A DNA stretch of 64,000 bases from Haliotis rubra (lineage: Eukaryota), in NCBI RefSeq assembly GCF_003918875.1, contig NW_025767157.1, positions 1,178,001 through 1,242,000 of the forward strand, in the 5' to 3' direction. The notes below the pieces were generated by a model. It did no database searches, was not told the origin of the DNA, and saw only the letters and a program-made list of their open reading frames with translations. A program made the position numbers and the translations under genes. Numbering within the stretch: position 1 is the first letter of the stretch; each line of letters opens with the position of its first letter. Positions 3,047 to 64,000 of the stretch are shown in pieces.

Positions 3047-5665
3047 ATGAACTCCAGCAAGACAACCAGCCTACTTCTGTAGCTAAACTCCAGCAAGACA
3101 ACCAACCTACTTCTGTAGCTGAACTCCAGCAAGACAACCAACCTACTTCTGTAGCTGAACTTCAGCAAGACAACCAACCTACTTCTGGAGCTGAACTTCA
3201 GCAAAATAACCAACCTACTTCTGGAGCTGAACTCCAGCAAGACAACCAACCTACTTCTGGGGCTGAACTCCAGCAAGACAACCAACCTCATTCTGTAGCT
3301 GGACTCCAGCAAGACAACCAACCTACTTCTGTAGCTGAACTCCAGCAAGCCAACCAGCCTACCAACCTACTTCTGTAGCTGAATTCCAGCAAGCCAACCA
3401 GCCTACCAACCTACTTCTGGAGCTGAACTCCAGCAAGACAACCAACCTACTTCTGGAGCTGAACTCCAGCAAGACAACCAACCTACTTCTGGGGCTGAAC
3501 TCCAGCAAGACAACCAGCCTACTTCTGGGGCTGAACTCCAGCAAGACAACCAACCTACTTCACGAGCTGAACTCAAGCAAGACAACCAACCTACTTCTGG
3601 AGCTGAACTCCAGCAAGACAACCAACCTACTTCTGTAGCTGAACTCCAGCAAGACAACCAACCTACTTCTGTAGCTGAACTCCAGCAAGACAACCAACCT
3701 ACTTCTGTAGCTGAACTCCAGCACCTACTTCTGTAGCTGAACCAACCTACTAACCTACTTCTGTAGCTGAACTCCAGCAGCAAGACAACCAACCAACCTA
3801 CTTCTGGAGCTGAACTCCAGCAAGACAAGCCCTTCTGGGGCTGAACCTACTTCTGTAGCTGAACTCCAGCAAGACAACCAACCTACTTCTGGGGCTGAAC
3901 TCCAGCAAGACAACCAACCTACTTCTGTAGCTGAACTCCAGCAAGACAACCAACCTACTTCTGTAGCTGAACTCCAGCAAAGCCAACCAGAGCTACTCCA
4001 GCCTACTTCTGTGTAGCTGAATTCCAGCAAGCCAACCAGCCAGGGCTCACTGGTAGCAACTCCAGCAAGACAACCAACCTACTTCTGGAGCTGAACTCCA
4101 GCAAGACAACCAACCTACTTCTGGAGCTGAACTCCAGCAAGACAACCAACCTACTTCTGTAGCTGAACTCCAGCAAGACAACCAACCTACTTCTGTAGCT
4201 GAACTCCAGCAAGACAACCAGCAAGACAACCAGAACTTCAGCAACTCCAACCAACCTACTTGTAGCTGAACTCCTGCAAATTCCAGTAGCTGAACTCCAG
4301 CCAGCCTACCAACCTACTTCTGGAGCTGAACTCCAGCAAGACAACCAACCTACTTCTGGGCTGAACTCCAGCAAGACAACCAACCTACTTCTGGGCTGAA
4401 CTCCAGCAAGACAACCAACCTACTTCTGTAGCTGAACTCCAGCAAGACAACCAACCTACTTCTGAGCTGAACTCCAGCAAGACAACCAACCTACTTCTGG
4501 GGCTGAACTCCAGCAAGACAACCAACCTACTTCTGTAGCTGAACTCCAGCAAGACAACCAACCAACCAACCTACTTCTGTAGCTGAACTCCAGCAAGACA
4601 ACCAACCTACTTCTGTGGCTGAACTCCAGCAAGACAACCAGCCCTACTTCTGGGGCTGAACTCCAGCAAGACAACCAGCCTACTTCTGGGCTGAACTCCA
4701 GCAAACCAACCAACCTACCTTCTTCTGTAGCTGAACTCCAGCAAGCCAGCCAGCCAACCAGCCTACCAACCTACTTCTGTAGCTGAACTCCAGCAAGCCA
4801 ACCAGCCTACCAACCTACTTCTGAGCTGAACTCCAGCAAGACAACTAACCTACTTCTGAGCTGAACTCCAGCAAGCCCAACCTACTTCTGTAGCTGAACT
4901 CCAGCAAGACAACCAACCTACTTCTGTAGCTGAACTCCAGCAAGACAACCAACCTACTTCTGTAGCTGAACTCCAGCAAGACAACCAACCTACTTCTGTA
5001 GCTGAACTCCAGCAAGACAACCAACCTACTTCTGTACTTCTGGGCTGAACTCCTTCTGTAGCTGAACTCCAGCAAGACAACCAACCTACTTCTGTAGCTG
5101 AACTCCAGCAAGACAACCAACCTACTTCTGGGGCTGAACTCCAGCAAGCCAACCAACCTACTTCTGTAGCTGAACTCCAGCAAAACAACCAACCTACTTC
5201 TGGAGCTGAACTCCAGCAAGACAACCAACCTACTTCTGGGGCTGAACTCCAGCAAGACAACCAGCCTACTTCTGTAGCTGAACTCCAGCAAGCCAACCAA
5301 CCTACTTCTGGGGCTGAACTCCAGCAAGACAACCAGCCTACTTCTTGGGCTGAACTCCAGCAAGACAACCAACCTACTTCTGTAGCTATACTCCAGCAAG
5401 ACAACCAGCCTACCAACCTGCACTTGCAGTCCTACAGGGGAACTACTCTACTTCCGCACATGCAGTCTCATAGGGCAACCATTCAACGTCTGTACATGCA
5501 GTCCTACAGGGCAACCAATCTACTTCTATTCTTGAAGTCCTACAGGGCAACCAACCTACGTCTAAACTTGTAGTCCTAAAGGCCAACCAACCTACTTCTG
5601 CCCTTGCCGTCCTACAGGGCAACCAACCAATGTCTTTGTTTGAAGTCCTACAGGGCAACCAACCC
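3047..5665. repeat. 36-bp minisatellite (~65 units) with a diverged right end
   Basis: Unit gaactccagcaagacaaccaacctacttctgtagct. 5420-5665 is a diverged variant (gtcctacagggcaaccaacctac). Confidence 0.95.
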
Positions 5666-8065
5666 ACTTGATAAAGGCGGCGTCAAACCCAGCAAACTCA
5701 CTCACTCACTCTCTAAATGCCAAACAACAGAATTGATATGCCTGAGAACGGAATATGTTATGATGATGAATGTGAACACAAGCCGGTTGGATTGAACAGC
5801 AATGTCAGCGATGTCATTGCATTGAAGGCAGTGAATCACAAAATATCATATTCCTGCGGTACATCAAGGGGAAGAGCGAGAGATCCGGTAGATATTTATA
5901 CAAGCCGTTTGCCAGAACTGTGTCCCTTCACTCTTTAAATTCGTGACGAATGTTTCCCGTTGTCTATTGGGTCGAACTTTCGTGTTGCAAGTTCCGTCTA
6001 CTTGCATCAACTCATCAAAATTCATATATTTCAATCGAACATCCAAGCCGTAGTGAAAACATTATTAGTTTTTACATCGAAATGTAATTTCGAAGGATTT
6101 GCTTTCAGAGTGTATGGTGGGAGAATGCTAATGATTTCCTAGAGTCAAGTTGTATTATACGACGAATCGCTGTAATACAACCCTCCCGAGCAGATCCATG
6201 TTTCATGTCCGATTTCCTGGCTACTCAACGCCCTAGAAATACATTATAATCATCACCCAAAATGTTGTTATTCGGCATAACACAGAGTCGGCAATACGTG
6301 GCAACATGTTAACACGAGATTCCAGACGATGATACGCGCTATGGTCCCATAACGTTGAAAGATAATGAGGAACGTGAAATCACGTCTCTCAAGATGGTAT
6401 GTTCTGAAATATAAAGGCCTGTCTGTGATGAACAGGCTCCACCACAGACATACGGGGACCGTAGATCGTCGCTTGTGGTCCTCTCCAGGGATCTCTTGCA
6501 TCATCATCCCCGTCCTCATCCCTCGTGGTTCATCTTGGTGCGCTGATAGTATAGAGAGCTTTCTAATTAACTGTGATACCTAAAATCTTCTTTATATGAC
6601 GCAGTAGGGATTACGATATGGATTTTTGGGCTTTATCTCTCGACAATACGCCTTCGTTTCCACCATACGAGTAGGTCACAATTTCACTCCACCTATGTGA
6701 ACTGTTTGAAGCTGTATACTGTCGGACAGGGCAGGGAAAGTATGACACTGATATACAAACAGAAATTTGCATTTAGGCAGTTTATGATATGATATAAATA
6801 GCTGTGTTTCCAATCTTTTCCGTAGTGTTTACAGATGCTAATCCGCCAGTGTCCGTCCCCGTGAGATCGCTCCTCGTTCTGCCTTCTCTCATTGAATTAC
6901 GCTATGACCCGTCATCGATTAGTTTAGTATTTACATAAACAAATTACTGTTAATATGTCGGAGGCTTCTTTACGGCGTAGCCTCACTAGCCACTGTGTGG
7001 CGACATACACTAAAGTTTAATTGGGTTTGGCGGCGATTGCCGAGATATTTGCCGTCGTGCATTGATCTCCACTCACTATATGATATTAGTGGACAACCGC
7101 TCACGTGCGGGCCTGTATTCGTGGAGTGATTACTGGAAGCTCTTCACACCACGTGTGATAAGCGAAACCTACTTAACGGGTAATGGGTGGAAAGAGCCGC
7201 CCTTTCAAATAAGTGTTTTTATCTTCAATTCAGTCGCGTGTGATTGCGTTTTGATCGCGTTGATAAGTCTTATACAGATGCAAGTCTATGATATGGCACT
7301 GATACGCATCTGTCAGGGAGATGGTCAGATGGCCGTCATGACGTGACATTGGGGACGTATCGGTATGATCTCTGATAACATGGAACACAGTGAATGAATC
7401 AACGTATGTCACCACTGTTGATGGCTGGTTTACACAGACAATACATCTCATCAATAATAAAGTGTGATCAGGCATACATAATGTAAACAAGAGTGGTGAT
7501 GATTGTGTTGGGGGTCACTGATCCGTTCACAGAGGAAGCGTCCGCTAATGTAGGTTCAAATAGCATGAAACCTAATCCTGACTGTCGTCATGTCTGACTC
7601 AGGGACATCTCCATGAGGCTGATGAAAGAGTTATATACCTGTATATGCTATATACCCCCTCGTGTGACAAACTATGTCACAGTATACATAGTTTATGACG
7701 AACACCATTATATCGAATTGACGGATAAATCGAACTACTCGGGTCCCGGACACTGGCTGTATATGTCATATCTACAATGCCATTCCCCATTCGCGAGGAA
7801 TTTTCTTTTTATCAGTATCCTCTGTAAAATGGTTTAGCTCGATATGTGATGAATCGTGTTATATCTAAGTCTGATATACTTTATCATATCTATATATTTG
7901 ATGTATCATGATGTTATATAATTTATTTATCTGATATACCATATTATACCTCATTCGTGATGAATAATGTTATATATGTGTTTGATATACACGTTTATAC
8001 CTCGTGGTGAGTCATGCTATACCTGTCTGGCACACAACGTCATGCATTGTTATGCCCTGTTAGTG

Positions 8066-9559: not shown

Positions 9560-10832
9560 TACTAAGCAGCAAAAGAAACGTCAGTTTGGAATTTTCCTTC
9601 GCAGAAACGGATAACTGTAAACTCACTAATGCTTTGATTGTATATTTTTTGACATCATCTCCAACTTAACCTGAGCAAAGACATTCCTTTCCAACCTCAG
9701 AATTGAACCCAGGAAATGGCCTCAAAAACGCAACCTGATCTCGGAGATGGTACGGTGTTCTCCATGTTTTTCATGCAACTCATGCTGCACGTGCTGTTCA
9801 CAAGCAGCAGCCCTATAAAATGCGCCCCCAAACCTGGTTGAAACATTCACATTACAACGTCAGCAGGATGCTGCGACTCACGACAGCTCAGAGGAACCAG
9901 GTGCTAGGAAGACTTGAAGCTGGCCACACTGCACAAGCTGTTGCCAATCACTTCCAACCATCTACAGGCTGCAGCAACGTTTCCGGGCCACCAACACCAC
10001 AAATGATCGCCCCCGTACTGGCAGACCAAGGGTGACCACAAGACGACAAGACCGCCATGTTGTGCGACAGTATGTACAGGATCCCTTCATGCAGGCATCC
10101 GAAACAGCACGCCACACAGTGGGAACACACGGAAGACCAATCAGTACTGATACAGTAGGCCGACGTCATCGGCGTGAAAGTCTACAGTTTGCCCTACAAA
10201 ACCAAAACTGGCGATACAGGCAATGGAGAACTGTTTTGTTCACAGGTGAGAGTCGGTACTGCGTATCAACTGCAGATAGTAGAACAAGAACATGGCGACG
10301 ACGTGACCAGCGTTACTCAGGCCAATGTGTTATGGAAAGAGACTCATGGGGAGGTGCAAGCATCATGGTATGGGGTGGAATAGGCCTGAACCAGAGAGTG
10401 GGTCCTGTGGTGTTCCAGAACCTTGGTCCAGGGAGAGGAGGCGGCATCACAGCGGTGCGCTACATCGACCAAACTCTCAGACTCCACGTCATACCACATT
10501 TCGCACGTCACCGGAACAACATTTTCCAGCATGATAACGCCTGGGCCCATACTGCCAGAGCTACACGGGACTTCCTACAGCAGAACGGTGTCAACATTAT
10601 GCAGTGGCCAGCCCTTAGTCCTGATTTAAACCCAATTGAACATCTTTGGGATGAAATTCAGAGGAGACTGAATAATGTCATACCAAGGCCGAACACAGCC
10701 GATTTATTGCGCCAGGCCTTTCTCAGAGTGTGGTTCCAGGTGCTAATGGCCTTCATCAATCGATTGTTGCACTCCATGCACAGAAGCTGTGCTGCAGTTA
10801 TTGCCGCTCGTGGTGGTCACACTAGATACTGA
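9560..10832 (+). mobile_element. Tc1-like (DD34E) DNA transposon, defective
   Basis: Left end TA|tactaagcagcaaaagaaacg. The transposase has the RPRTGRPR AT-hook, QHDNA, and WPALSPDLNPIEHLW with 34 residues between D and E. No right TIR found. Confidence 0.88.
9868..10832 (+). pseudogene. Tc1 transposase pseudogene
   Basis: ATG at 9868; frameshift/deletion near 9955; probable in-frame deletion near 10165; first catalytic Asp changed (VLFTGESRY versus the usual F[ST]DESRF). Confidence 0.88.
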
Positions 10833-13809: not shown

Positions 13810-15075
13810 TAGCCCATCACCAACTTCATCGAACCCCATCATAGCCATCACCAACTTCATCGAACCCCATCATAGCCCATCACCTAATTTCATCTAACCC
13901 CATCATAGCCCATCACCAACTTCATCTAACCCCATCATAGCCCATCACCAACTTCATCTAACCCCATCCATAGCCATCATAGCCCATCACCAACTTCATC
14001 ATCTAACCCCATCATAGCCCATCACCAACTTCATCTAACCCCCATCACCAACTTCATCTAACCCCATCTAATAGCCCATCACCAACTTCATCTAACCCCA
14101 TCATAGCCCATCACCAACTTTCATCTAACCCCATCATAGCCCATCACCAACTTCATCAACCCCATCAAGCCCATCATTTCTAACCCCATCCCATCATAGC
14201 CCATCACCAACTTCATCATAGCCCATCCCTAATTTCATCTAACCCCATCATAGCCCATCACCAACTTCATCTAACCCCATCCCATAGCACCATCACCAAC
14301 TCAGCCCATCCCTAATTTCATCTAACCCCATCATAGCCCATCACCAACTCAACTTCATCTAATCCCCCATCCCATAGCCCATCACCACTTCATCTTCATC
14401 GAACTAACCCATCATAGCTTCCATCACCAACTTCATCTAACCCCATCATGGCCCATCACCACAGCTTCATCTAAACCCCATCATAGCCCATCCCTCCAAA
14501 TTTCTATCTAACCCCATCATGGCCATCATCAGCTTCATCTAACCCCATCATGGCCATCACCAACTTCTATCCATGGCCATCACCAACTTCATCAACTTCA
14601 TCTAACCATCATATCTAACCCCATCATAGCCATCACCAACTTCATCTAACCCCATCATAGCCCATCACCAACTTCATCTAACCCCATCATAGCCCATCCC
14701 AATTTCATCTAACCCCATCCTAGCCCATCCCTAATTTCATCTAACCCCATCATAGCCCATCACCAACTTCATCTAACTCCATCATAGCCCATCACCAACT
14801 TCATCTAACCCCATCATAGCCCATCACCAACTTCATCGAACCCCATCATAGCCCATCCCTAATTTCATCTAACCCCATCATAGCCCATCACCAACTTCAT
14901 CTAACCCCATCATAGCCCATCCCTAATGTCATCTAATCCCATCATAGCCCATCACCAACTTCATCTAACCCCATCATAGCCCATCACCAACTTCATCTAA
15001 CCTCATCATAGCCCATCACCAACTTCATCTGACCCCATCATAGCCCATCACCAATTTCATCTAACCCCATCATAC
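13810..15075. repeat. 32-bp minisatellite in an mGluR intron
   Basis: Unit catcatagcccatcaccaacttcatctaaccc. Confidence 0.95.
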
Positions 15076-15479
15076 CTCATTTCAACCCCGTCCTTGCCCC
15101 TTTTATTCCGTTTTCCACACTCTCACCCACATGCCCACTAACGCATGTGAAAATCAAATAACCTAATACCCCCTCCCCTGGTTCAGTCCTGTTTACAACC
15201 AGTACCTGACACGGTCCATTAGACAACTAGCCAACTGTGACCGGAACGTAGGTTTTCAAAGGAATCCAATATGTTTGCAGCGCAAATCTAGTTTCTGTTT
15301 TACTAACAAGACCCCTGACTATTCTGTATATAGTTAAGTGACACTGACTGGCAATGGATGATAAACTTTATATGGTCTGCTGGCCGCTCGTTACGGATCT
15401 ACTGACGGTTGTATTACAGGATCCTAGATAGGGAGTTTTACTGGGAGTTTCACTGGAATGATTTCAGAAGGCGACCAAC

Positions 15480-15726
15480 CTGCCTATGAAGAGGAACTTC
15501 CCTTCCACATCATTCCTCTCCATCGCCTTGAGCAGCGCCTTGATCGTCAACCCCTCACAAAAGCAGACCACTACAGAAGCGTTGGGTCTGCTCTTCAGGT
15601 TTTGAATAACCTTGTCGAACTCTTCGTCTGTTCCAGAGCTGGACACACTGTTGGTTGTGGCGATACAGATACCCCTCTCTTCCGCCTTAGCCTTGAATGC
15701 CTGCATGCCCCGCACTCCGTAGTTCC
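15480..15726 (-). CDS. GRM1/5-like: mGluR coding exon 2
   Basis: Encodes (G)NYGVRGMQAFK...VVVCFCEGLTIKALL...FLFIG(S). Acceptor TTTTAG and donor GTTGGT; phases 1/2 join in frame with the neighbouring exons. Confidence 0.95.
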
Positions 15727-15807
15727 CTAAAACAGGAAGATAAATCTAACGTCACCCATCTTGATTTGACACTACGATGATTCTCTCAGTGATATTCTTC
15801 AGTTTTA

Positions 15808-15926
15808 GGGGGAGATGGGGTAGCCTAGCCCACATGAGTGCAATGTGTGAAGCTCATTTCCGGTGTCCCCAGACGTGATATTGCTGGAATATTACTAAAT
15901 GCAACGTAAATCTAAACTCACTCACT
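15808..15926 (+). mobile_element. SINE family A with an internal deletion removing the B-box
   Basis: ggggtagcctag is joined directly to cccacatgagtgcaatgtgtgaagc; the tail is intact. Confidence 0.8.
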
Positions 15927-16036
15927 AAAACTCACTTTCATTAATGCCTCAAGCAGTGGCAATTCCAGAAGAACATATCGTATTACCATTATACAACTAT
16001 CTAATTTATAAGACGCATGACATAGAGTTAACTCAC

Positions 16037-16754
16037 CATCTGAATTTATAGTTGAGATATAAGTCCAGTTAAAGTGAAGTACAATATCCACCAGTGCCTG
16101 AGCCTGGTAGTTGTCAGGAGGGACAACTCGGAGAAAATACTTATGCAGCTTGTTGCTCAGGTCCATACTTGTAGCGGAGTAGCCTATCTGGGGAATGTTG
16201 AAAATTTGAAGCAGATTCTGAACTTGTATACTCGCTTCACTTGACCCAGGCCCTATGAGGCCGGCAATAGGTTGCAGGTTTCCATCTTTACACTCACTGG
16301 ACTGGTTGCCACCGTTTGACGTCCCATTCGGCTCTGTCTTGCTGGCAATGGCGTCCTTGATGAAGTCGATGCTCTGTTCCAGAGCAATGGCGGAATACCA
16401 ACAGGAGTCCCGGATGTCACAGCCCAGAATGACGCCCGGAAGTATGTTGTCATTGTCGTTGATCTCATCCAGTGTCATGAGGACGGTCTCAACCCTCTGG
16501 ATGCCATAGTGTTCACGTATCTTCCCACAGGTACGAGAGTAGGCCGTAGCGGATGGAGGTTTGTGGTGGATGGAGAACAACGCACCGAGGATGACGTCGC
16601 CCTCGATGCGTGCGCTGAATTGTGGCGTTACGCACGTCACCGTATCAAAACAGAGATAGGTCAGGATGACGTACACTCCCAAACCTACCCAAGTGTTGGT
16701 GTGTCCATCTATCATCATCCGCCGGTCTTCGTGGTCAGGGGAGCAACTATTCAT
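16037..16754 (-). CDS. GRM1/5-like: Group I metabotropic glutamate receptor, first coding exon (signal peptide + start of Venus flytrap domain)
   Basis: Translation contains GDVILGALFSIH, YGIQRVE, GCDIRDSCWYSAIALEQSIDFI and IGPGSSEASIQVQNLLQIFNIPQIGYSATSMDLS, typical of mGluR1/5. Donor G|GTGAG after 16037; acceptor TTTTCTTTTCAG before 16849 (5'UTR part 16755-16849). Confidence 0.95.
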
Positions 16755-39989: not shown

Positions 39990-42317
39990 GTGAAGGAGAT
40001 GATAATGTCGTAGAGAAGGGTCGCAGTCGTAGCCGAGCCAAAGCTAAAGTTGAGGAAGAAACAGAAGAGGTTGCAGCTGAACCTGCACGAGCCAGTGGGC
40101 GGAGTCGAAGTCGAGGAAAACCTGTTGAACCAGAGGCTGAGACAAAAAAAGAGGCAGCTAATAATACCAGTAGTCGAAGTCGTGCTAAAGCAAAGGCAGA
40201 AGAAAGCAATAATGACAAACCTGTGGTGGAATCAGGAAGAGCTGGCAGAAGTAGAGTGAAAGCACCTGCAAAGACACCAGATGAAAAACCGGCAGAAACT
40301 GGGCGAGGCAGTAGAAGCAGGTCCAGCAATAATGAAAAGGCTGAAGAGTCTACTCCAACAAATAGTAGAAGCAGGAAAAGTGCTAAACAAGTTGACAACA
40401 CCCCTGAGGAAGTTGCAGAGACAAGCCAACCAAAGAGCAGAAGCCGAAGCAGAGGTAAAGCTGCCGAAACTAAGTCTCCAGAAGCTGAGGTTGACACAGG
40501 CAGAAGGAGCCGAAGTAGGGGCAAGCCTGTTGAGAGTCCAGTCAGTGAATCTGTCGGATCAAGTAGATCGTCCAGTAGGAGTCGAACTCCTAAGCCTGCT
40601 GCGGAAGATGTTGTTGAACCAGCAGTGGAGGAAGACAAGGGCAGGGGCAAATCTCAGGCTAATGGGAGCACCAGAGGCAGCAGCAGGAGAAGGTCTTCGG
40701 GCAAGGTTGAAGATCCAGGTCCAGCTGATGACACAGAGATGACTCCTCCAGGGAGACGCAGTGGAAGAAAGCAAGCAAAACCAGAAGCTAATCAGACTAG
40801 TCCTACAAAGAGACGACAGAGTGGGAGGAAGAGTAGCACTCCAGATAATGACAGCGAGATGCCAATGGATCAAACTGACAAACAAGCTGTGGTTCAGTTG
40901 ACAAAACTGAGAGATGAGGAAGTAGAAGCAGAAAGGAAGTCTCCTGTCAAAGCTGCTGAGGAAGAAGCCACAGATAAGGAAACTGTGGACGAGGAAGCTA
41001 GCAACGATGAAGTTGTTCAAGATGCCAAGGAAGAAACTGTAACAAAAGAAAAAGAAGAAGTCAAAACTGTCGCAGAGGAAATTAAGTCTACAGAGGATAA
41101 AGTACCAGATGAGCCAATGGAAGAGGAGACAGTTAAGCCAGAAGCAAAGGATGAAACAGAAATAACTAAACCTGAAGAAAATGAGGAAAAACCTGTTGAA
41201 TCAGAAGAAAAAGTAACAGCTGTCATTAAGGAGGCTGAAGCTACTGAAGAGACGCTCCCCATCGCTGAGGACAAGGAGTCTGATAAAGTAGATGGTGCTT
41301 CAGCAGCAGCTGAACTTACCAGCCAGAAGACAACACTTCAAGACACTGAACCAGAACCAGCAGAGACTGACAAGTCTCAAATATCTGAGGATATCGTTGA
41401 AGGAAAGGATGAGAGGGAAGTTGAAAGCATTGTTGAGAAAATGGAAACAGATGAAGTGGAAGAAACTCCAGCAAAGAAAGAGTCAGCACCGTGCAATGGC
41501 ACTTTGTCAATCCCAGAAGTCCCAGCAGACCCCGAACAAAGTCAGGAAAAACAAAACATTACAGTTTCTCATGGTCAGAAAAGAAAGTTAGAGCATGATG
41601 AATCCTTTGAAGAAAACGAGAGCAAACGTGTGTGTGTAGAGAGCCCAGTTACACAAGATACTGAAGCTGGTGACATGGAGGTCTCGCAACCTGATGATGA
41701 TAAAGCAAATGAGGAAATTGAGTCCCGTACATCACAGCAGCCTATCATTGAACCAATATCTGATGTGTCCAGTGCAGAAGAAGAACCAACACCTGCTCCA
41801 ATCACTTCCAGCCAAGAGCCTGTTCAAGCAGAAAAAACATACAGCCTCCTGTTGAAAAGAGCACAGAGCCACCTGCACCAGAGCGTGAAGTACCTCTGAT
41901 TGAGATAAGCAAAGAGCCGTCAGTTGAGATAAGTAAAGAGCCATCAGTTGAGATAAGCAAAGAGCCTTCAGTTGAGATAAGCAAAGAGCCTTCAGTTGAG
42001 ATAAGCAAAGAGCCATCAGTTGAGATAAGCAAAGAGCCTTCAGTTGAGATTAGCAAAGAGCCTTCAGTTGAGATGGGGGAAGTGTCTCCAGCTGAGACAG
42101 GTGAGGAACCTTCAGTTGAGATAAGCAAAGAGCCTGCTGTTGAGATAAGCAAAGAGCCCGTTTCAGAAGCATCAAATCAAGAACCTTCTCAAGGGGAGGC
42201 AAAAGAAGAGCAGGATTTGACATCTAGCTATGTTATCATCAGCATGGATGGTGTACCCCAGCTGACAGTGCACTGGTGAAGGAGGCCCTTCCTAATCACA
42301 CGAACCAAACAGAAGAA
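39990..42317 (+). CDS. EEP protein, coding exon 3 (large low-complexity RS-rich/acidic exon; two apparent 1-nt homopolymer indels)
   Basis: In frame with ORF 40223-41899. Adding one A near 41835 and one C near 42257 restores the frame through ORF 42073 to the donor GAA|GTAAGT (phase 0). Confidence 0.82.
41898..42160 (+). repeat. 24-bp coding tandem repeat (VEISKEPS)
   Basis: gttgagataagcaaagagccttca, about 9 units with one interruption. Confidence 0.9.
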
Positions 42318-52519: not shown

Positions 52520-52650
52520 TGGCCAAGTGGTTCGATTCCCCACATGGGTATAATGTGTGAAGCCCATTTCAGGTGTCCCCCCCGCCGTGATGTTGCTGGA
52601 ATGTTGCTGAAAGCGGTGTAAAACCATAGTCACTCACTCACTACTCACTA
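52520..52650 (+). mobile_element. SINE family A, 5'-truncated
   Basis: B-box, body and (CACT)n tail. Confidence 0.85.
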
Positions 52651-53873: not shown

Positions 53874-55188
53874 ATGGCGAAACAGTTGAAACCTAAGCCG
53901 CTTTCAGTTGTAACAGAATATAGTCCTGATCTCATTTTGGAAGTAGAATCTGTTACTGGAGACAGTGACAATGGAAGACATATGGACAGTATTTCCTCCG
54001 AATCAGTTACAGAGGAAGTGTATGAACCAGAAATGTATTACGATGACGCAGAAGATGGCGGAGAATCGGAATCGGATTCCGAGCCCGAACAGCACCTCGT
54101 GGACACAAGCGAATTCACAACTCCTGATCGTCCATTGAAGTTTACCGTCAGACTTCTACTTGACTGGTGTCAGAAAAACAACATTGACATAGATCTAAAA
54201 ACCATAAAACCTGCCGCTCTGGATCAAATTCTGTGTAGGTTTTACGTAGAAGTCCGGAGTAAAGCCGGACAGCGATACTCCAGAAATACCATCGTTGCAA
54301 TAAGGTACGGTCTAAATCGGTATTTCGCAAACATGGTACCGCCAAGAAAGATGGACATTATTGAAGAAAAGGCATTCAGGTATTCCAATGCGGTGTTCAA
54401 ACGTGTTGTTAAAAGTGCCGCCAGGGAAAACCCAGAACGAACAAGCCCCCGCATGACGACAGAGGATCTGAGGAAAATATACAGTAGTGATGCATTAAGC
54501 CCCAACACCCCACTCACCCTTCTACTCAAAGTGTGGTTTGAAATCAGCGTGTACTTCTCGAGGAAACGGTCAAAAGTGCAACGGGACACCAAGACGACAG
54601 ACTTCATCTTTGACGTTGACAGCGACGGACGTCGTTATGCAACCGGAGCTTTACGAGACGAGGAACGTGATAGATGTCGGATGTATGAGAAGAAAGGTGA
54701 TGAGATGTGCCCCATTTTATCCCTAGAGAAGCTGCTGATGAGAATCGACCCTAACTGCCAGTACCTATTTCAGCGTCCAAGACTCTCCATACCAGACAAA
54801 AGCAGTGCCTGGTATCACCCGGAACGGATTGGCAGAAACTTTACTTCTCAGATGATGGGAAAGATCACCAAACTAGCTGAACTTGATACAAAGTACACTA
54901 ATGTTTCAATGAAGAAACTAGCTCCCTGGTCGCTGGAGGAACTTGTTTTCCAACACAGGTATCAGGTCATGTCTGTACAAAAGAGTCAAGCACTGCTTTC
55001 ATACACTACGTCATCTACATCAGGACCTGGACTTGTTCCAGCTGATAGATCACTACTCCCAGCCACACTCCCTACCGACTCCACTAAGTCGGTGGGGTGC
55101 AACACTGAGGAGGAGAGGGGGGCATTTAGGCCATACGTCAGACGGAAATCACAGACGAAACCAGACAGGAAGGGTCAGCATATTCTGG
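53874..55188 (+). CDS. Crypton-derived (DUF3504-like, KCTD1-N-type) protein A, coding exon 1
   Basis: Motifs LDQILCRFYVEVR..G..YSRNT..AIRYGLNRYF, DII...F..SN.VFK, P..L..KVWFEI..YF, CPI.SLE, LFQRP, WY....IG.N. ATG in AAAATGGCG; donor G|GTAAAT. Confidence 0.88.
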
Positions 55189-55350
55189 GTAAATATAACT
55201 CTGTAACGGTAATGTAAGTAAAGGGCTAGGGAGGGCTAGTAAGGTTGCTATGTATTTACTGTTCATGGGTACCATCATGGTAGTGCTGTGTCAGTGTTAG
55301 AGAGCCTCCAATTGGTGTATTCACTTACTGGTACAACATCACATTTACAG

Positions 55351-55482
55351 GAGGCCCTGATCCCATAGATGTGAATACAGCGAAAGCCAAGATAAAGCGG
55401 GTATTCCAGCGCCTGGTGTACTCCGACCTAGTCACTGTTGTTGACTGGCTCAAGCGGATCGATGTTCTCAAAGACACTTCTG
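55351..55482 (+). CDS. Crypton-derived protein A, exon 2 (conserved ~45-aa module)
   Basis: Boundaries TTTACAG|...|GTAGG, phase 1/1; encodes GPDPIDVNTAKAKIKRVFQRLVYSDLVTVVDWLKRIDVLKDTS; homologous to 63760-63909. Confidence 0.85.
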
Positions 55483-55909
55483 GTAGGCCAACGTCAACCT
55501 CCCATGCACTGCTATTGTTCTTAAAATAGTTTAACAGAACTTATCCAGCTTATCTGTATTTTTCACATACCAGAGTGTGTTATGAAAAATAGTTTCCTAC
55601 TAACAGGAATTCACTTGCTACGACCCTTCAGCCTTCCGATGCAAAATTATTCCAGTTGACCAGTTACCCCCTTTGCTGCGGCTGATCATTCCCCCTTCCT
55701 CCTCGACCATACTTCGTGCATATGTTCGATTCTTAAGTTTTGAGTAGCATAAGTAAAACAAGGTTATCACATTTCTTGCAGTCGGGTTGACTCAAGTCAC
55801 TATGGATCACCCTGAGTTAGTGTAATAATACGCGAAAAGCTTGGATACAATGTAAACTGCCTATTCAGACAAGTTGAAACACAACAAATGTGTTTCTCTC
55901 CTTTCTCTC

Positions 55910-55968
55910 TCCCCTGTGATATTGCTGGAACATTGCTAAAAGCAGCATAAAACTAAACTCACTCACTC
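55910..55968 (+). mobile_element. SINE family A 3' fragment
   Basis: gtgatattgctggaacattgctaaaagc...actcactca. Confidence 0.75.
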
Positions 55969-56411
55969 ATGCCTGAAAAACGATAATAAAGAAGGAGACA
56001 TCAAGCCAATGCAAAATCATCCACTGATTGTATTTATATCATAAGTTGATTAGTAAACATGTATGTTATACCTTAATTATTTTTGAATTATTGTATTAAA
56101 TTTTTAACTTGTGCCTGACATCATTTGGAGCTGATGACCAGAGTACTGCTCCAGAGTGGTAACCTTGTTTGGGTCAATTATGGTTGTGGGAAGAATGAGG
56201 TTACCAGTCCACATGTGCTAACATTGGTCAGTCAAGGTTAATGTGGATTATACCTTAGTCAACACGATTCACATGGGTCGATGGCAACATATTACAGAAC
56301 CATGGATGAAGCGGCCATTGGTTTCTCTGGTTCTGACGTCACTGGACAGTGTCACCAATTGACTAGGGGGACTTTTACTATTCTTCAATATGATTTCTTT
56401 TCTTATTCCAG

Positions 56412-56980
56412 GGATAGTGTTTTGTCGGGAAAACTGTTATAGGATAATGGAACAGCCGCCAAGAGCCCGAAGGTTTACTCCACGACAGGTTCATCCAACA
56501 CAGCCACCCCAGTCGGCCATCCAGCCCTACATCCTACCATCTCCACTGTCACTGTCCCAGTACTACATGAACAACGCCGTCAACACTGCTGCTGCTGCTG
56601 CACCTCGTCCGGCAGCCATCTTCTTTCCCCAATTTCCTCTCACCTCTCAGAACCAGACTGCCACCAGTCTTGCATCACAGGAGTCCTCTCTGCCAAGACA
56701 TACTGCATCCTTACTAAATGCCTCTGTTACAGCCAAACCCACCAACCAGGACCATTTCAAGTACCAAACAGGATCTGGGAATGGTTTCAATAGTGCCAGG
56801 AATGGCAAGCAGCTCGCCATAGCTCCAAGGCCTGCTGTCACCGCAACAACACCAAGTCACTCCCTCGGCCACAGTACACAGCAGCAGACAGCAGACGACA
56901 GCACTCCCCCACACCATACAGTCAAGTTGCCCAAGCGGGAAACTGTGTCCAGTTTGGTGGTCAACATCAGGGCAACATAG
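56412..56980 (+). CDS. Crypton-derived protein A, exon 3 (P/Q/S/T/A-rich tail; true stop may be 57075)
   Basis: Strong acceptor TTTCTTTTCTTATTCCAG; phase 1 fits exon 2; composition is low-complexity, like a transcription-factor tail. Confidence 0.75.
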
Positions 56981-57929
56981 ATGCCAGTGACAACACCGCA
57001 TCGACAACATCACCACAAAAGAAACTTAAAATTTCTAATGTCACAGGTGAAAGTAAAGTCTGGAAGATTTTGTAGACTGTTCACCCAAGTTCAACATGAT
57101 GAACTATAGCCAGCAGAGACGACTCTCTGGACCATATGCAGACTTCATCTAGAAATCTACACCATGGCCTACGATTGGCTTATTCTTCAAACATATGCAC
57201 TGTACACTTGAGGAATGGTTGAAATTGCTTCAATATTTACCTCACTGACTGGATCCAAAAGAGATCATGTCCATTAAAAAAAAAGTCTTGAACTGAGAAT
57301 TCAAGCTTCATATGAATGGTTATCCAAATGAAAATCGTGTCTGTCTTTTGCTCCTGTATCACAAATATTTCTGCAATGTGTTTTGTAATTACAGTTTGTC
57401 CCGGAAGCAAGTTACCCATAATCTACATTCTACACCATAGATCCAATGTCTGATCAACTTATGGTATCATGACAAATGCTGTATCATTAAAGTATTCAGG
57501 TATTTAGGCTGCCAGAGCATTTCTATTTAGAAACGATTATCAGTTCATCACATTTACTGGAAAAAAACATGCAATACACTATCGAAAATGTTAAAAGTGA
57601 TTTGGAACATACAGTCCACTCGGACTATTAACCTGATATGATCACTTCTGATATGTTGTTGGTTATTAATTTTCGCCTGCGGTTATCTCCCCTTTCAGGT
57701 TTGCATGTTAGTTTATTGTGCTTTCACCTTCGCGCTTCCTTCTTGGAAGTACTGTAAAGTTGTTTTATTACATTTTGAAATAAAATCATTTTTGTATTTT
57801 AACTCCCTGTCATTAATACATATTAGAATTGTTGTTTTGAATTATCTTTTATATTTCTTCTCATCGTTAGGAAAGGAAGTATGGGGGAATAGGTGTATAC
57901 ATGGGGATTATGGGTAGGAATATTGGTTC

Positions 57930-58110
57930 TTAGCAACGTGTGCTGGTCGAAGAGGCTGCTTATGGAAGTGGATGGTAGGGCTTAGCGCTTGGATCACTGC
58001 TTGTCATCGGGTTAAATTACGTGAACCAATGCTCATGATGTCAGTCACTGGATTGTCTGATCCAGAACTGATTACTCACCGACCGCCGAACGTTACGTGT
58101 GGCGTTAGAA
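57930..58110 (+). mobile_element. Old, diverged family B copy
   Basis: tcactggattgtctgatccaga...gaccgccg. Confidence 0.6.
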
Positions 58111-58347
58111 TATACACAAAACCATCCCATTGATCGTTGGCGTAGTTTCTGATAGTGGAACGACTTCGTGTCAGCGTTAGGCATTTAAAAACACCCAGAA
58201 CACCTCAGAATTCTTGTCAGAGTCAACAAATACACAGCACCCTTGCACAGGCCGTTTTAACATCCGTTCTGTTACATAATCGCCTAAACTGAAATCCTAG
58301 GTTTCTGAGAGTTTTACCTCCCACCAGTCTACTGATAATAAGAACAG

Positions 58348-58492
58348 GGTGAGTGAGTTGGGTTTTACGCCGCTTTTAGATTATTCCAGCAATATTGGCC
58401 GGGTCACCACAAATGGGCTTCACACATTGTACCATTGTGGGAGATCGGCGTGACGACCAAACGCTTTAACCACTAGACTACACCACCGCCCC
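58348..58492 (-). mobile_element. SINE family A (minus strand)
   Basis: gagtgagttgggttttacgccgc...aaccactagactacaccaccgcccc. Confidence 0.85.
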
Positions 58493-58494
58493 GA

Positions 58495-58715
58495 TATTGG
58501 TAGAATTGGTCTTTAGCAAACCATGCTTGCCGTAACAGGCGATTAACGGGTTCGGGTGGTCAGGCTTGCTGTCTTGGTTCATCTATGTGATGATCTCCCC
58601 AATTGTGTAGATCCATGTTTATGATGCCAATCAATGGATTGTCTGGTCCAGACTCGATTATTTACAGAACGCCGTCATAAATTATAGCTAAAAGTTGATG
58701 GGTACAGCTTTAAAA
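58495..58715 (+). mobile_element. Family B copy, head-to-head with the adjacent family A copy
   Basis: ccatgcttgccgtaacaggcgattaacggg...gtctggtccagactcgattatttacag. Confidence 0.8.
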
Positions 58716-59256
58716 ACAGTTTGTTTACTATTTGAAACAATCTGATTGTGAAACTTCGGGACATTCAAATAAATGTAGACCGCGAAGAATGCATTCCCTT
58801 TGAAGCCACACCGGACCCCATTTGGTCATTCAGTCTATGTGTACTATCTTCTAATCTCCTGAGTTTGTGCACGTATCTCGTCCGTGTGACGTCGGCCCGT
58901 GCATCTCCTGCTGTTTGCGTCCTGTTTATTTTACCCAACACAATAATCACAATATGGACAATTATACATCGGCACACCTGTGATGATAGGTAGCGTTAAA
59001 ATACCTTCCCTTACCAAACCAGATGACACAATACTGTTATTACGCAATCACTATCACTCACTAAAGACGATTATTTAACACTGCTGTTATTTTGACAATA
59101 TATTTTAAAGACTGTTCGTGAAAATAACGGATATATTTATATAGTGCATGCTTGTGAACTACTGATGTTTTTATCATCAGTTTGGTGAATGTTATTTGTA
59201 CTCACTACAGTCAACAGAATCGGGAAAATATTGTGTTCAGCAGCCTGCAGCCTTGA

Positions 59257-59416
59257 CTGACTGAGTTTGGTTTTACGCTGCTTTTAGCAATATTCCAGCA
59301 ACATCACGGCGGGGGACACCAGAAATGGGCTTCACACATTGTACCCATGTGGGGATTCGAACCCGGGTCTTCGGCGTGACGAGCCAACGCTTTAACCACT
59401 AGGCTACCCCACCGCC
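59257..59416 (-). mobile_element. Full-length SINE family A (minus strand)
   Basis: TSD (gc)ctgcagccttga at 59243-59256 and 59414-59427; intact A and B boxes. Confidence 0.93.
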
Positions 59417-60901
59417 TGCAGCCTTGAACTCGGGAGGTAAAGGTAAAAGGGGATAGATCATTTGTTGTTGTTGAGGAGCAAAATCGAGAATTCTAAACCA
59501 TTACTCTGCGGTTAGACCTCGCACCTCGTGGGGTGTTTACGTTTCATACACTTTCACTTCCACTTTCTATAATTTTGATATATCTTTATCAAATTCCTAA
59601 TTTTCTTCTTCCCTCCCCTAAATTAAAATCTCATAACTTGTAATCTTGCGTTCTCATATCCTTCCAAAATAACCAGTTTCGAGAAAGAACAGCGTTTCAC
59701 CAGTGTTGGTTTGACCTGCTTCCCTTTGTTTTGGAACTAAGACTAGTAGGACTGGACTATCTCTTGTAGTGATGCAGACGTGATATAGATGGTCATTCGC
59801 TCCGCAGGTGGAGTCAAGGACGAGAACTCGACATATGTAAGTAATATTTTGAGCTGGTCAATGTCAAGAAACGAAAACAACCAAAAGCGTGTTACAGTTA
59901 GATAACATGTGCACGTAGGCAAGATATTACAGGCTAAAGGATGATCTTGCAGAAACAGTTGAACCCAAAGATACACCATTATATAACTTCATTTCAGATA
60001 TGTCCTCCTATTTAACCGTCTCTAAATTCTTTCTCCTCCATGTTATTTCAATTAAAAGTTATATAAATCCCGACGTGTTATCAGTTATTGCACTTAGTAA
60101 AACGCATAAAGGCGAAAACCGTTTCTGAATTCTTTCTTTTCAAAGTTAATTTAATTAACAGTTGCATGCATTTCTATCTTGACTTATTTTCAGTTATCAC
60201 ACAGTGAAATGGGTAAAATGTAGTCCGCTTCTAAATGAAGACAGGTTTATCAAATAATGATATTTACGTCGTGGATTTCCTTTGCATAAATGTATACGAT
60301 GTGTTATGGCTTTTATTTTCTGCACACATAAGCCTAAGATGGGCATGGATATAAACCAGCTTCATTTCAAACAATACGTGGAACTGGCGTGAGGTAACCT
60401 AGATGTGACAAGACCGGGAGCATATGGAGAGGGATATTTAACTCTCACGGCCGTTTCCAAAAATAACTGAATTCGGTAGATAACTAGTCGTATCACACTC
60501 CCGATAATTCCCTTTGCGGCTGTTGGTTAACTTTAGTAACAGGTGTATATCAAACTTCTTGTTCTCATATATCGTGGAACATTCCGATAAGGCAGTATTC
60601 GACTGATACTCTCTCTGAAGCTAGTCGACACGAGACCAGTTTATCATAGCAGGCACAGGAATATCCATCGTTCCCTCCCAGTGTATTTGATCCACGCAAC
60701 GGCGTTTGTGTTAGAACAACGCATTTTTGAACTAAAAGAAACAAAAAACATTATCGGTAAGCAAACATTTTAACTTGCAGAGTTGTCTCTCTTTCAATGT
60801 TTACCGACACTAGGTGGCTTCCGGTATCATGGCTGTCAATCATTGAATATATTGTGTTGATTATGACTTTAGTGGTGATGTTGTGTTTTCATGTTTAAGA
60901 A

Positions 60902-62303
60902 ATGGACCCAACCAGCAAGGAAAGTGAAGAATCAACTCACAATGAGAAGAAGTCAGCGGTCGCGTGTTCAGACGCGCACCATGACACAGGAGTCAGCGAA
61001 GAGAACGTGGAAGACGCTGATGTTGATAACGAAGATCGTGATGATATTTACATGGTACCCGGCTCGAGTTCGGGAAACGGTGGGTCTGATGCCATGCATT
61101 CAAGCATGTTACGCATACCAACACCTGAAGAGTCTAATTTCCTCATGGAAAATAAAAATACAAACAGGAAAACTGGTGCAGATATGAAAATCCTTGTTAG
61201 CTACTTAAAATCTTTGAATGAAAAGCGCCCACCAGAATGCATCCCACCAATAGAACTTGATAAATACCTGTCCTCCTTCTTCATGGTTGTAAGAAAGTTT
61301 GACGGAGCTGAATATGAACCTTGCAGCTTAAGGGCAATGCTGGCTAGTATTGAGAGGTACCTGAAACTAAAATGCTACCCAACATCATTGACAAGAGATA
61401 TTCACTTCGCCAAGACAAGAGCTGCCTTGAAGCTGAAGCAGCAAATGTTGAAACAAATGGGTAAAGGTGTGAAGTCACAGATATCATCAACATCACATGT
61501 CATGGAACAGAGACTGTCACAGTTATGCAAATCTCAAGAATTTGGACCTTACACTCCTGTGTCTGTGCTGTTTTCTCTGTGCTTTGTGTTTGTTGTGAAT
61601 TTGAAAATGAGAAAAGCAACAGAACACAAGAAATTGTTGTGGGGAGACATAATGTTAGGAGTAGAAGAGGACTCTGGGAGAGAATATCTTGCATTTTCCC
61701 CACAAATGCTGCACAGAACAGCAAACAGTCACTTGCGTCAATCCCGGCAGATGATATGGAGCAAGCCAGAGATACCAGAACAGGATCCCGTGGCTTTGTA
61801 CAAACTATATGCAGAAAAACGACCTATTGCTGCCAATCACAGATACTCTCCATTCTACCTTGGTGTAAACGTCAATCAACCAGCCCCTGCTCAGTCCTGG
61901 TATCGCCCTTGTGCTCTGGGTATGAACAAACTTAATGAGATGGTGAGACAGATTCGTGACCTAACAGGAATGGCTGCCCAAGTTGCCCCATTTGAAGGTA
62001 CTGCTGCTGTAACTGGTGATGGGGACTCAAACTGTGACTCAACAAATGCCTCATCAGTTGATAATGACGAGGGAGAATTGAACACAAGCCAGATTGACAG
62101 TTATGGTCGACAAGACAGTAAGGTGTCTGATGTTCTTGCGTACCATGTGATTGAGCAACCAGATTCTGAACTGGACTCCAGTGATAGCCTGTCCCATCAA
62201 TCCCTCTCATTTAATGAAGAAGTGGTGGATGATGTTGCTGACCAACCTGATAACTGCCATGGAACTGTGTCAGGCTACTCTACGGATGATAACTTTGGTA
62301 ATG
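60902..62303 (+). CDS. Crypton-derived (DUF3504-like, ZMYM/QRICH1/KIAA1958-type) protein B, coding exon 1
   Basis: Motifs NTNRKT, LDKYLSSFFMVVRK.DG.EYEP.SL..MLASIERYL, F..TR.ALK.KQ..LK..GKG, DPV.LY..Y...RP, PFYL, WY....LG.N.L. Donor G|GTAAGT. Confidence 0.9.
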
Positions 62304-62824
62304 GTAAGTATAAATTTTTCAGTTTGTTCAATCATCAATGTACATTTTGTTTAAACACTCATGTTTGTTGTTTCATTGCTGTAAATAGTATTAGGCACAA
62401 ATGCAGTGACACTAGTTAGAACTTTTAACACAAAAGCTTTGTTACTATGGTAATTAATTTAGCATACTATTGGCATGCTAACCATAGCAACCAATTCCAA
62501 GAGGTTTGGAGGTTTCCATTAAAATGTCAGAATTCGGTAAATATTGGAAACACATGATAAGAATGAGCATTAAAAAACATGTGAGTAACCTATTATGATC
62601 ATGAACAGAATTCCAACTGGTCAAGTTTACTTATTTTAAAAAGGGAACAGAAAGAAACAGTTTTATTATTGCCTCAACACCACAGTCTCCAGTTAGAATC
62701 CAGGCATAGACAACATTGGTCATGTCCAAATAGTCCTATGCTCAGTTTTGAATAGTGGTTGTGTACAGTAAACATAGTAAAATAACAAGAATATGGGACA
62801 AGACAAGTAGTACCCCTGATTTGT

Positions 62825-63071
62825 ACCCGTGAAGATCCGGCTTAGAATTGATCTTCAGTAACCAATGCTTGTCGTAAGAACCGACTAACGGGATCGGGTG
62901 GTCAGGCTCACTGACTTGGTTGACACATGTCATTGTATCCCAATTGCGGAGATCGATGCTCAAGCTGTTGATCACTGGATTGTCTGGTCCAGACTCGATT
63001 CTTTACAGACCACCACCATATAGCTGGAATATTGCTGAGTGTGGCGTAAAACTAAATTCACTCACTCACTT
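62825..63071 (+). mobile_element. Family B element, full length
   Basis: Complete head, body and tail; flanking repeat gatttgt at 62818-62824 and 63074-63080. Confidence 0.9.
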
Positions 63072-63759
63072 CAGATTTGTTCCTCACTGAATTTTCTTAA
63101 ACAAACAGGAACACAGAAACAACTAAGTATAAACCTGGTTAAACTTCATTCAAACTATAAAGAGCAGAGTGTTGCTTGGGGCCACTGTTTGTTTGTTTGT
63201 TTGTTTGTTTGTTTGAATTAAAGTAACGGAAATCAAAAAAGTTCTTTTAATCTGAACTGCTGCATTGTTTTTACCACTTCCATTGATCTGTTTCTTTTAA
63301 ATACACTGTCATAGATGCAAATGTGCTTTTAGCGATCAAATTTGATAACCATGGTAAAATAGAAAGTATACAAATTTCACAGAAATTGTTAAACCTGTAT
63401 TGCCCATGACATGGCATTAACACAGTTATGGCAAGTCTTTTTTCATTCCTTTTTGACAGACTTTATCTTTATCATACTTCTCAATACTAGTTGGCAGGTT
63501 GGAGAAAATAACAAACAAACAAAAACATAAAAGAGTTCTGTTTGTGTCGTGTGTAATGCCTTGTAGGCAGTATTGGGTCCAGCTAGTTATCTAAGCCTTT
63601 GCAGTTTAATCTGTGATATGAACAATTTCTTTGCAGTTTTTCCTCATACATTCCCATCTAAAAGTAAAGTAAATCTATGGTTTTTTCTCATTATGGTTAG
63701 CATGAGAAGGATGTGTTTACTTTTATTTCCAACACTGGATATGTTTATATTTCTTCCAG

Positions 63760-63909
63760 AACCCCACCATTCTGAGCACACAGAGTACATTGATTTAGCT
63801 ACAGCTAAACATCAGCTGTCTGGGATTTTACAAAGGATGGACATTTTGGACCTGGTAGCATTTGACCAGTGGTTAAAGAAAATGAAGATTGGTCGGGACA
63901 CTGCAACAG
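63760..63909 (+). CDS. Crypton-derived protein B, exon 2 (conserved module; gene continues past the right edge)
   Basis: Boundaries TTCTTCCAG|...G|GTACAG, phase 1/1; encodes EYIDLATAKHQLSGILQRMDILDLVAFDQWLKKMKIGRDTAT. Confidence 0.85.
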
Positions 63910-64000
63910 GTACAGTTTCATTTCATGTTGTCAGAGTGGGGTATCTTTACAGGTTACATGACTAAAGGCAAATTGGCACCTTAATGTCTTTCACAACTCT

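Follow-up and report, generated by a model that had tools for sequence, protein, structure and literature searches.

The region 53874-63909 of the 64-kb stretch of the Haliotis rubra genome analyzed here (hereafter, the window) contains two genes, A and B, which lie on the + strand about 7 kb apart in the open reading frame (ORF) listing. Each of them joins a domain derived from a Crypton tyrosine recombinase to a small C-terminal module. A preliminary description of this DNA had proposed two ORFs on one strand, each with an acidic leader and a low-complexity linker. The ORFs (53874-55188 and 60902-62303) were confirmed, acidic leaders are present in both A and B, and the linker is predicted to be disordered in an AlphaFold model.

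Gene A (53874-56980) has three exons and corresponds to NCBI LOC124290567 (P0001, 671 amino acids). The 438 N-terminal residues of this "uncharacterized protein" are 100% identical to the translation of 53874-55187. Exon 1 (53874..55188) encodes the acidic leader, the recombinase domain, predicted to be dead (approximately residues 85-365), and the low-complexity linker, and ends at the donor G/GTAAAT, in phase 1. Intron 1 (55189..55350; GT..AG, phase 1), whose junction is that of P0001, is followed by exon 2 (55351..55482, phase 1/1), which encodes the module, two helices and then a beta hairpin. Intron 2 (55483..56411; GT..AG, phase 1) contains a repeat copy, described below, and exon 3 (56412..56980) begins with G-IVFCREN, which completes the module hairpin, and continues into a Pro/Gln/Ser-rich tail up to the stop codon at 56978-56980.

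Gene B is preceded by a 5' untranslated stretch (60824..60901) covered by RNA-type contigs (X1 record 6; records 19 and 27). Its exon 1 (60902..62303) encodes an acidic leader, a recombinase domain, also predicted to be dead (approximately residues 84-356), and an acidic disordered linker, ending at the donor G/GTAAGT, in phase 1. Intron 1 (62304..63759; GT..AG, phase 1) separates it from exon 2 (63760..63909, phase 1/1), which encodes the module, and the gene runs on past the end of the window. The ORF of exon 1 is 95% identical to H. rufescens LOC124116631 (P0005, 764 amino acids), and after the part corresponding to exon 1 this protein continues with the sequence encoded by 63760-63909. With B exon 1 as the query, a word search retrieved no protein of H. 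rubra, whereas the annotated A protein was returned; gene B may therefore be mis-modeled or unannotated in the H. rubra annotation, despite its intact transcribed ORF.

All seven splice sites of A and B are canonical GT-AG. In both genes, the last base of exon 1 is the first of a codon, and the small exon is in phase 1/1, in agreement with the junctions named in the preliminary description (55188/55351, 55482/56412, and 62303/63760), and those of A are reproduced exactly by the annotated protein P0001. For B, contigs from four transcriptome-like runs, whose type is recorded merely as a guessed "RNA?", were mapped on 57950-63949. A contig of 2888 nucleotides (X1 record 6) covers 60824-62298 and then, without a gap in the contig, 63759-63911, with a further 1256 nucleotides outside the window. 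The same 62298-63759 join was found in a second study (X7 record 30), and a contig of a third study (X6 record 23) lies on 63759-63906. The ends of these alignments are no more than 5 nucleotides away from the 62303/63760 junction that had been predicted, and downstream they stop at about 63909-63911. The contigs spanning the junction diverge by about 4.7% from the window, which indicates that they come from a congener, and run X2, whose species label is that of the best DNA matches, covers 61166-62158 in three pieces with 0-6 differences. Intron 1, which the spliced contigs skip, has a contig depth of zero except at a dispersed repeat; coverage limited to the exons fits an RNA origin of the runs. 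Gene B, with spliced contigs in three of the four runs, is transcribed and spliced.

The introns and spacers of A and B also contain copies of a tRNA-like short interspersed nuclear element (SINE), in both orientations, at 52529-52642, 55911-55975 (A intron 2), 58012-58679, 59248-59416, and 62843-63070 (B intron 1), for example GGTTCGATTCCCCACATGGG; in the transcriptome-like runs, the summed contig depth over these copies is very high. Two inverted repeats, 52529-52640 and 59254-59363, were considered as possible element ends flanking A and rejected, as they are dispersed copies of this kind. The genes had been said to show no terminal repeats, and indeed the repeats of the region are dispersed SINE-like copies and not element termini.

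Recombinase domains without the catalytic residues

Exon 1 of B matched the Pfam family DUF3504 (PF12012) with an E-value of 8.7e-18, and exon 1 of A matched DUF3504 (0.0017) and the QRICH1 domain (6.5e-5), both below the Pfam cut-offs. The homology of A is secure despite these sub-threshold matches, since the A family aligned with active Cryptons in hhalign with an E-value of 3.7e-23 and a probability of 99.5% over 265 columns. The B family aligned with active Cryptons at 4.8e-77, and the two families aligned with each other at 3.6e-11; the domains of A and B themselves are 22% identical over 252 residues (E 2e-8). In the AlphaFold model of the B orthologue P0005, the predicted local distance difference test score (pLDDT) was above 90 across the domain, and Foldseek searches with this model returned QRICH1 (9hjt_H, E 1.2e-10) as the best match, followed by many Cre chains at about 1e-4. 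Both A and B keep the two-lobed, Cre-like recombinase fold. The Crypton/DUF3504-like domain first recognized by eye is thus borne out by Pfam for B, by hhalign for the A family, and by the fold match to QRICH1 and Cre.

The catalytic residues were aligned with those of P0033 and P0034, two active-looking Cryptons with R, H-x-x-R, H, and Y in place and a match to PF00589. Gene A has lysine instead of arginine I, in the sequence FSRKR (54555..54569), aligned with the Crypton FGLRG. A vestige of the H-x-x-R box follows at 54894..54917, where YTNVSMKK takes the place of FTNHSGRK (H to V, R to K), at a spacing from the WY motif identical to that of the Cryptons. In B, arginine I is retained (LKMRK, 61601..61615), and nothing is recognizable past the helix ending at 61969, so that the H-x-x-R box, the histidine, and the tyrosine are missing. 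These losses indicate that both proteins are catalytically dead, each in a different way. An intact catalytic tetrad and a PF00589 match were absent from A and B in both the Pfam scan and the alignment.

Also consistent with the preliminary description, no MYM-type or other zinc-finger family was found when Pfam was run on A and B (exon 1 of each), on the A-type protein P0004, and on the B orthologues P0016 and P0038. No BTB domain was found either, the C-terminal parts of P0001 and P0005 matching no Pfam family at E ≤0.1. Established cases of Crypton recombinase domestication include WOC/ZMYM2-4, the long isoform of KCTD1, and KIAA1958 (Kojima and Jurka 2011, PMC3212892). Like A and B, these are conserved single-copy host genes with a CryptonA-like DUF3504 domain that has lost the tetrad, and they are presumed to be regulators of transcription or chromatin. 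In WOC/ZMYM2-4, however, DUF3504 is preceded by MYM-type zinc fingers, and in the KCTD1 long isoform it is followed by a BTB/POZ domain, whereas the partner of the domain in A and B is an unnamed module found only in molluscs. A further difference is that B retains arginine I and A retains the full length of the catalytic domain.

The closest comparison is QRICH1, which was both the best structural match of the P0005 model and the sole sequence match of B in the PDB (E 1.6e-4); A had no sequence match at all in the PDB. QRICH1 is a vertebrate DUF3504 protein and a member of the Zincore complex, together with SEPHS1. As in A and B, its dead Crypton-type recombinase fold is made of the PF25561 and PF12012 regions, and it probably acts by clamping DNA-bound factors. 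The domain of QRICH1 is C-terminal, behind a CARD and a Gln-rich region, whereas that of A and B is near the N-terminus and is followed by the linker and the new module, and Pfam scans of A and B found no CARD. Going by its title and by a citation in PMC13538652, the Zincore-ZFP91-DNA structure 9hjt places the dead recombinase domain of QRICH1 on a DNA-bound zinc-finger factor.

Active CryptonA proteins (P0033 and P0034, together with cnidarian, amphioxus, and bivalve proteins) are 32-35% identical to B by BLASTP. Shared with A and B are the N-terminal lobe and, of the catalytic lobe, the first two thirds. Unlike A and B, the active elements keep R, H-x-x-R, H, and Y and the PF00589 match, are present in many copies, and have neither the module nor splicing to downstream exons.

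A shared C-terminal module

The small exons of A and B, with the first residues of the next exon, are homologous over their whole length, of about 45 residues. The common pattern is A-K/Q, then Q-R-L/M-D, then W-L-K, and then I..D..(T)G and ..VCRE. The module exons have 44-50 codons and encode a confidently predicted helix-helix-strand-strand structure. A six-frame search of the 64 kb with the module profile gave two matches alone, at 1e-19 (B) and 5e-19 (A), so the homology claimed for the phase-1/1 exons stands. The module, described at first as unrecognized, has no Pfam model.

When folded in isolation, the module region gave helices at 13-26 and 29-41 and strands at 42-46 and 53-57, with pLDDT values of 93-97. 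The hairpin is followed by a disordered loop and then by two further strands, 96-104 and 115-123 (pLDDT 93), which form the second conserved strand pair in B (NITLNISLTP..PVTVTA). No solved structure resembled the module: the wide VIA search reached at best Z 3.4, with small helical-hairpin dimerization or docking domains, and these were not counted as matches. A likeness to the ET domain (Taf14; Foldseek E 1-4, probability ≤0.47) was set aside, as VIA gave Z <2 for the Taf14 rows; when Foldseek's top chains were re-scored with VIA, all had Z <2 except one unrelated chain (Z 2.4).

The module profile was also searched against 1.84 billion representative proteins at E ≤0.001, which gave 20 matches. 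The short ones are single-exon fragments, and all but one of the long ones are DUF3504 proteins. These comprise P0002, which is the A orthologue, and proteins of the B type, in which DUF3504 is followed by an acidic linker, the module, and a second motif (NITLNISLTP..PVTVTA). The exception, P0042, shows eight weak partial stretches (its sequence was not fetched) and looks like a repeat artefact. No active Crypton with the module was among the 20 matches. The named members of the matching clusters are from Octopus, Lymnaea, Mytilus, and Elysia, all B types, and with Patella, Lottia, Saccostrea, Pinctada, and Haliotis every identifiable match is molluscan. The family therefore looks lineage-specific, as had been suggested. 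The other suggestion, that the exon is a host exon shared with other genes, was not borne out, as none of the 1.84 billion proteins has the module without a DUF3504-type domain.

This constant association raises the question of whether the module could be a remnant of the C-terminal part of the ancestral Crypton, with A and B collinear with a single transposon ORF into which introns were inserted later. Active CryptonA proteins (P0033, P0034, P0053, P0119-P0132) have two conserved stretches outside the Pfam recombinase models: the first, just past the catalytic tyrosine, is NNYS.LS..QQ..IS.ILS, and the second, C-terminal, is G-G-x-(I/F)-(T/N)-I-(N/S)-(V/F). By eye, the first resembles the start of the module (NYVSLTTAQKQ in Patella B and NYSHVTTAQQQ in P0033), and the GGNITIN ends of some active Cryptons resemble NITLNISL of B. 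These likenesses, although striking, found no statistical support. Among 171 collected proteins, the module profile was blank on the active Cryptons (best E 0.3, at another position); hhalign of the module against the Crypton tails gave a probability of 2.5% (P 0.019), again at another position; and a profile of the second motif matched nothing. Moreover, A has the recombinase tail region and, about 70 residues further on, the module too, and animal Cryptons are reported to have no C-terminal domain (PMC3212892). We thus rejected the tail resemblances and hold this origin of the module to be improbable.

Conservation of the pair in molluscs

The protein encoded by A is 90% identical to its orthologue in H. 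asinina and 86% to that in H. rufescens. For B, the identity is 95% in H. rufescens and 46-63% in Patella, Lottia, Saccostrea, and Pinctada. The A-B pair is in tandem in H. rubra and H. rufescens and convergent in Patella and Lottia. In both limpets, B has as its opposite-strand neighbor a gene of the A type, which carries a module exon as well; pieces of these genes are 27-30% identical to A by tblastn, and their modules match at 2.6e-7 and 1.5e-5. A further A-type gene, encoding P0004 (on L001), has 40% identity to A, and a module exon (E 7.6e-12) comes after it in the same phases. The A-type module exon is in phase 1/1 in Haliotis, L001, and Patella, and the three-exon plan of A is that of all five B orthologues mapped (Haliotis, two limpets, and two bivalves). 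In Saccostrea (L005 1-71) and Pinctada (L006 1-6629), B adjoins an ATXN7L3/Sgf11 gene on the opposite strand, a neighborhood common to the two bivalves and not seen at the gastropod loci.

The B type is single-copy and is found in cephalopods, bivalves, and gastropods. This spread corresponds to hundreds of millions of years of mollusc history, and conservation across the three classes gives the A/B family an age of that order. The cluster had been expected possibly to extend further, and no third module was found in the 64-kb window, nor in the 10 kb flanking the H. rufescens pair on each side. The window contains one A and one B, and the protein clusters have 1-5 members from one contig, numbers that do not amount to a whole-genome count.

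Both genes are under strong purifying selection. In the comparison of H. rubra with H. rufescens, the ratio of nonsynonymous to synonymous substitution rates (dN/dS) was 0.058 for the A domain and 0.013 for the B domain, and 0.031 and 0.035 for the module exons of A and B, respectively, with dS values of 0.24-0.67. For the whole of exon 1, it was 0.111 in A and 0.085 in B. These ratios are far from 1, and the locus is conserved between abalones and limpets, so that synteny and selection both came out as expected for domesticated genes.

The opposite reading, that A and B are merely defective Crypton copies in a chance tandem and not host genes, would account for their homology to Crypton recombinases. 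It is hardly credible given the other observations. Orthologues are at the same locus in three abalones and two limpets, those of B extend to bivalves and octopus, and dN/dS is 0.01-0.11. The introns are conserved, B is spliced, and there are no element termini. Furthermore, the A and B protein clusters are small, whereas those of active Cryptons have tens to hundreds of members. Conserved gene order and purifying selection refute the reading as defective copies, and A and B are host genes. Together with the loss of the catalytic residues and the splicing of B, this sustains the initial proposal that they are domesticated Crypton-derived genes.

Origin, proposed role, and surroundings of the pair

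The best reading of these data, which we consider probable, is that in A and B molluscs have two ancient host genes, paralogues produced by the duplication of one ancestral gene. A Crypton tyrosine-recombinase gene would have lost its chemistry, while the Cre-like DNA-clamp fold would have been kept in both A and B. The ancestral gene would already have coupled a nearly intact recombinase domain to the module exon, and a tandem duplication would have taken place in the common ancestor of abalones and limpets or earlier. After it, the copies would have decayed differently, A losing arginine I and the H-x-x-R box and B losing everything from the box through the tyrosine. The adjacency of A and B in two deep gastropod lineages, the same order of parts, and the same exon plan support a duplication. 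The sharing of phase 1 is uninformative in this respect, as no other phase would allow a fusion to the module exon.

The observations that weigh against a single ancestral gene are mostly those that would favor two. In the domain tree, A and B, which the preliminary description had assigned to apparently different subtypes, form separate, deeply split clades. The unconstrained tree has B weakly nested among the active Cryptons (support 81) and A outside them on a long branch. Forcing an A+B clade costs 3.3 log-likelihood units, with a P-value of 0.0955 in the approximately unbiased (AU) test, which is not comfortable, although a single clade is neither rejected nor supported by the test; A and B may belong to different subtypes. 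There are no obvious derived residues common to the A and B domains. In addition, A retains the region of the H-x-x-R box, which every B lacks, and the duplication would therefore have to be older than the divergence of cephalopods, bivalves, and gastropods, yet in the two bivalves no A type was seen within 10 kb of B. Also to be counted against this interpretation are that the module has no structural relative (best E 0.9 in Foldseek and best Z 3.4 in VIA), that the splicing of A is known from the NCBI model P0001 and from the conservation of its junctions rather than from reads, and that the function proposed below for the two genes is argued from analogy.

The main alternative is that one set of 3' exons, encoding the module, served on two occasions. 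In a B-type gene, the 3' half (the module exon and what lies downstream) would have been duplicated, and a second, different Crypton would have landed upstream and been spliced on, so that A and B would be two separate domestications with host-side exons in common. The tree topology and the retained box region of A agree with such a history, as does the fact that the A family is closer to the active Cryptons than to B (E-values of 3.7e-23 and 3.6e-11, as above). A captured Crypton ORF, being intronless, would also yield one large first exon, and its phase-1 donor would be dictated by the acceptor, so that the common phase is no counter-argument. On the other hand, the long branch of A makes its placement unreliable, and A+B as one clade is not rejected. 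No free-standing host gene of the module, from which the exons could have been taken, was found in the search of 1.84 billion proteins. Two rare events at one locus would be required, and both genes have the same order of acidic leader, domain, disordered linker, and module. We therefore regard separate capture as unlikely, though less so than a Crypton origin of the module. If it were true, transposon domestication would have had in this mollusc-specific docking module a landing platform that could be reused, and today the two dead recombinases may act as a heteromer through it.

The modules themselves contribute one observation to the history of the pair. All the A-type modules have a one-residue deletion in common, which argues against a recent exchange with B. 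The comparison of the module tree with the domain tree, incongruence between which had been proposed as a sign of independent capture, was dropped, since the module tree (fifteen 40-residue strings, 41 columns) was unresolved.

As for their role, A and B would be nuclear adaptors, in which the dead recombinase would clamp DNA, or transcription factors bound to it, by analogy with QRICH1 (9hjt) and the ZMYM proteins (PMC3212892). The C-terminal module, beyond the flexible acidic linker, would be a unit for protein-protein docking or oligomerization, and may stand in for the lost C-terminal segment with which tyrosine recombinases hold their neighbors. In B, the module may close onto the second strand pair. 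Having the same module, A and B may compete for a partner, share it, or bind each other.

Crypton domestication is known mainly from the vertebrate or bilaterian ZMYM/WOC, QRICH1, KIAA1958, and KCTD1 genes, to which A and B add a further family, apparently confined to molluscs. The database entries for its proteins are all "uncharacterized" or carry automatic names. Our literature search reached the general remark that molluscs have several DUF3504 genes (PMC13465315, 2026) and found no published description of the family, its module, or the A-B pair. The two paralogues decayed in complementary ways, the catalytic lobe keeping its length in A and arginine I surviving in B. As a natural experiment, the pair can tell which elements of a dead recombinase fold are needed by a host. 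It is also a testable case of duplication versus repeated capture, and the family defines a small, confidently folding module for which neither a Pfam model nor a structural relative was found.

Elsewhere in the window, an exon-sized ORF at 15921-16754 on the - strand, upstream of the A-B pair, encodes an ANF_receptor ligand-binding region (Pfam 2.6e-33) and is part of a receptor gene. The ORF 10032-10829 (+) has a DDE_3 transposase domain (Pfam 8.7e-13) and is probably a remnant of the Tc1/mariner type. A long ORF without a Pfam match (40223-41896, +) is inside a stretch of strong AT skew (0.41), and the GC skew is strongly negative at 4001-6000 (-0.30) and 14001-16000 (-0.53); all three stretches are probably simple or satellite-like sequence.

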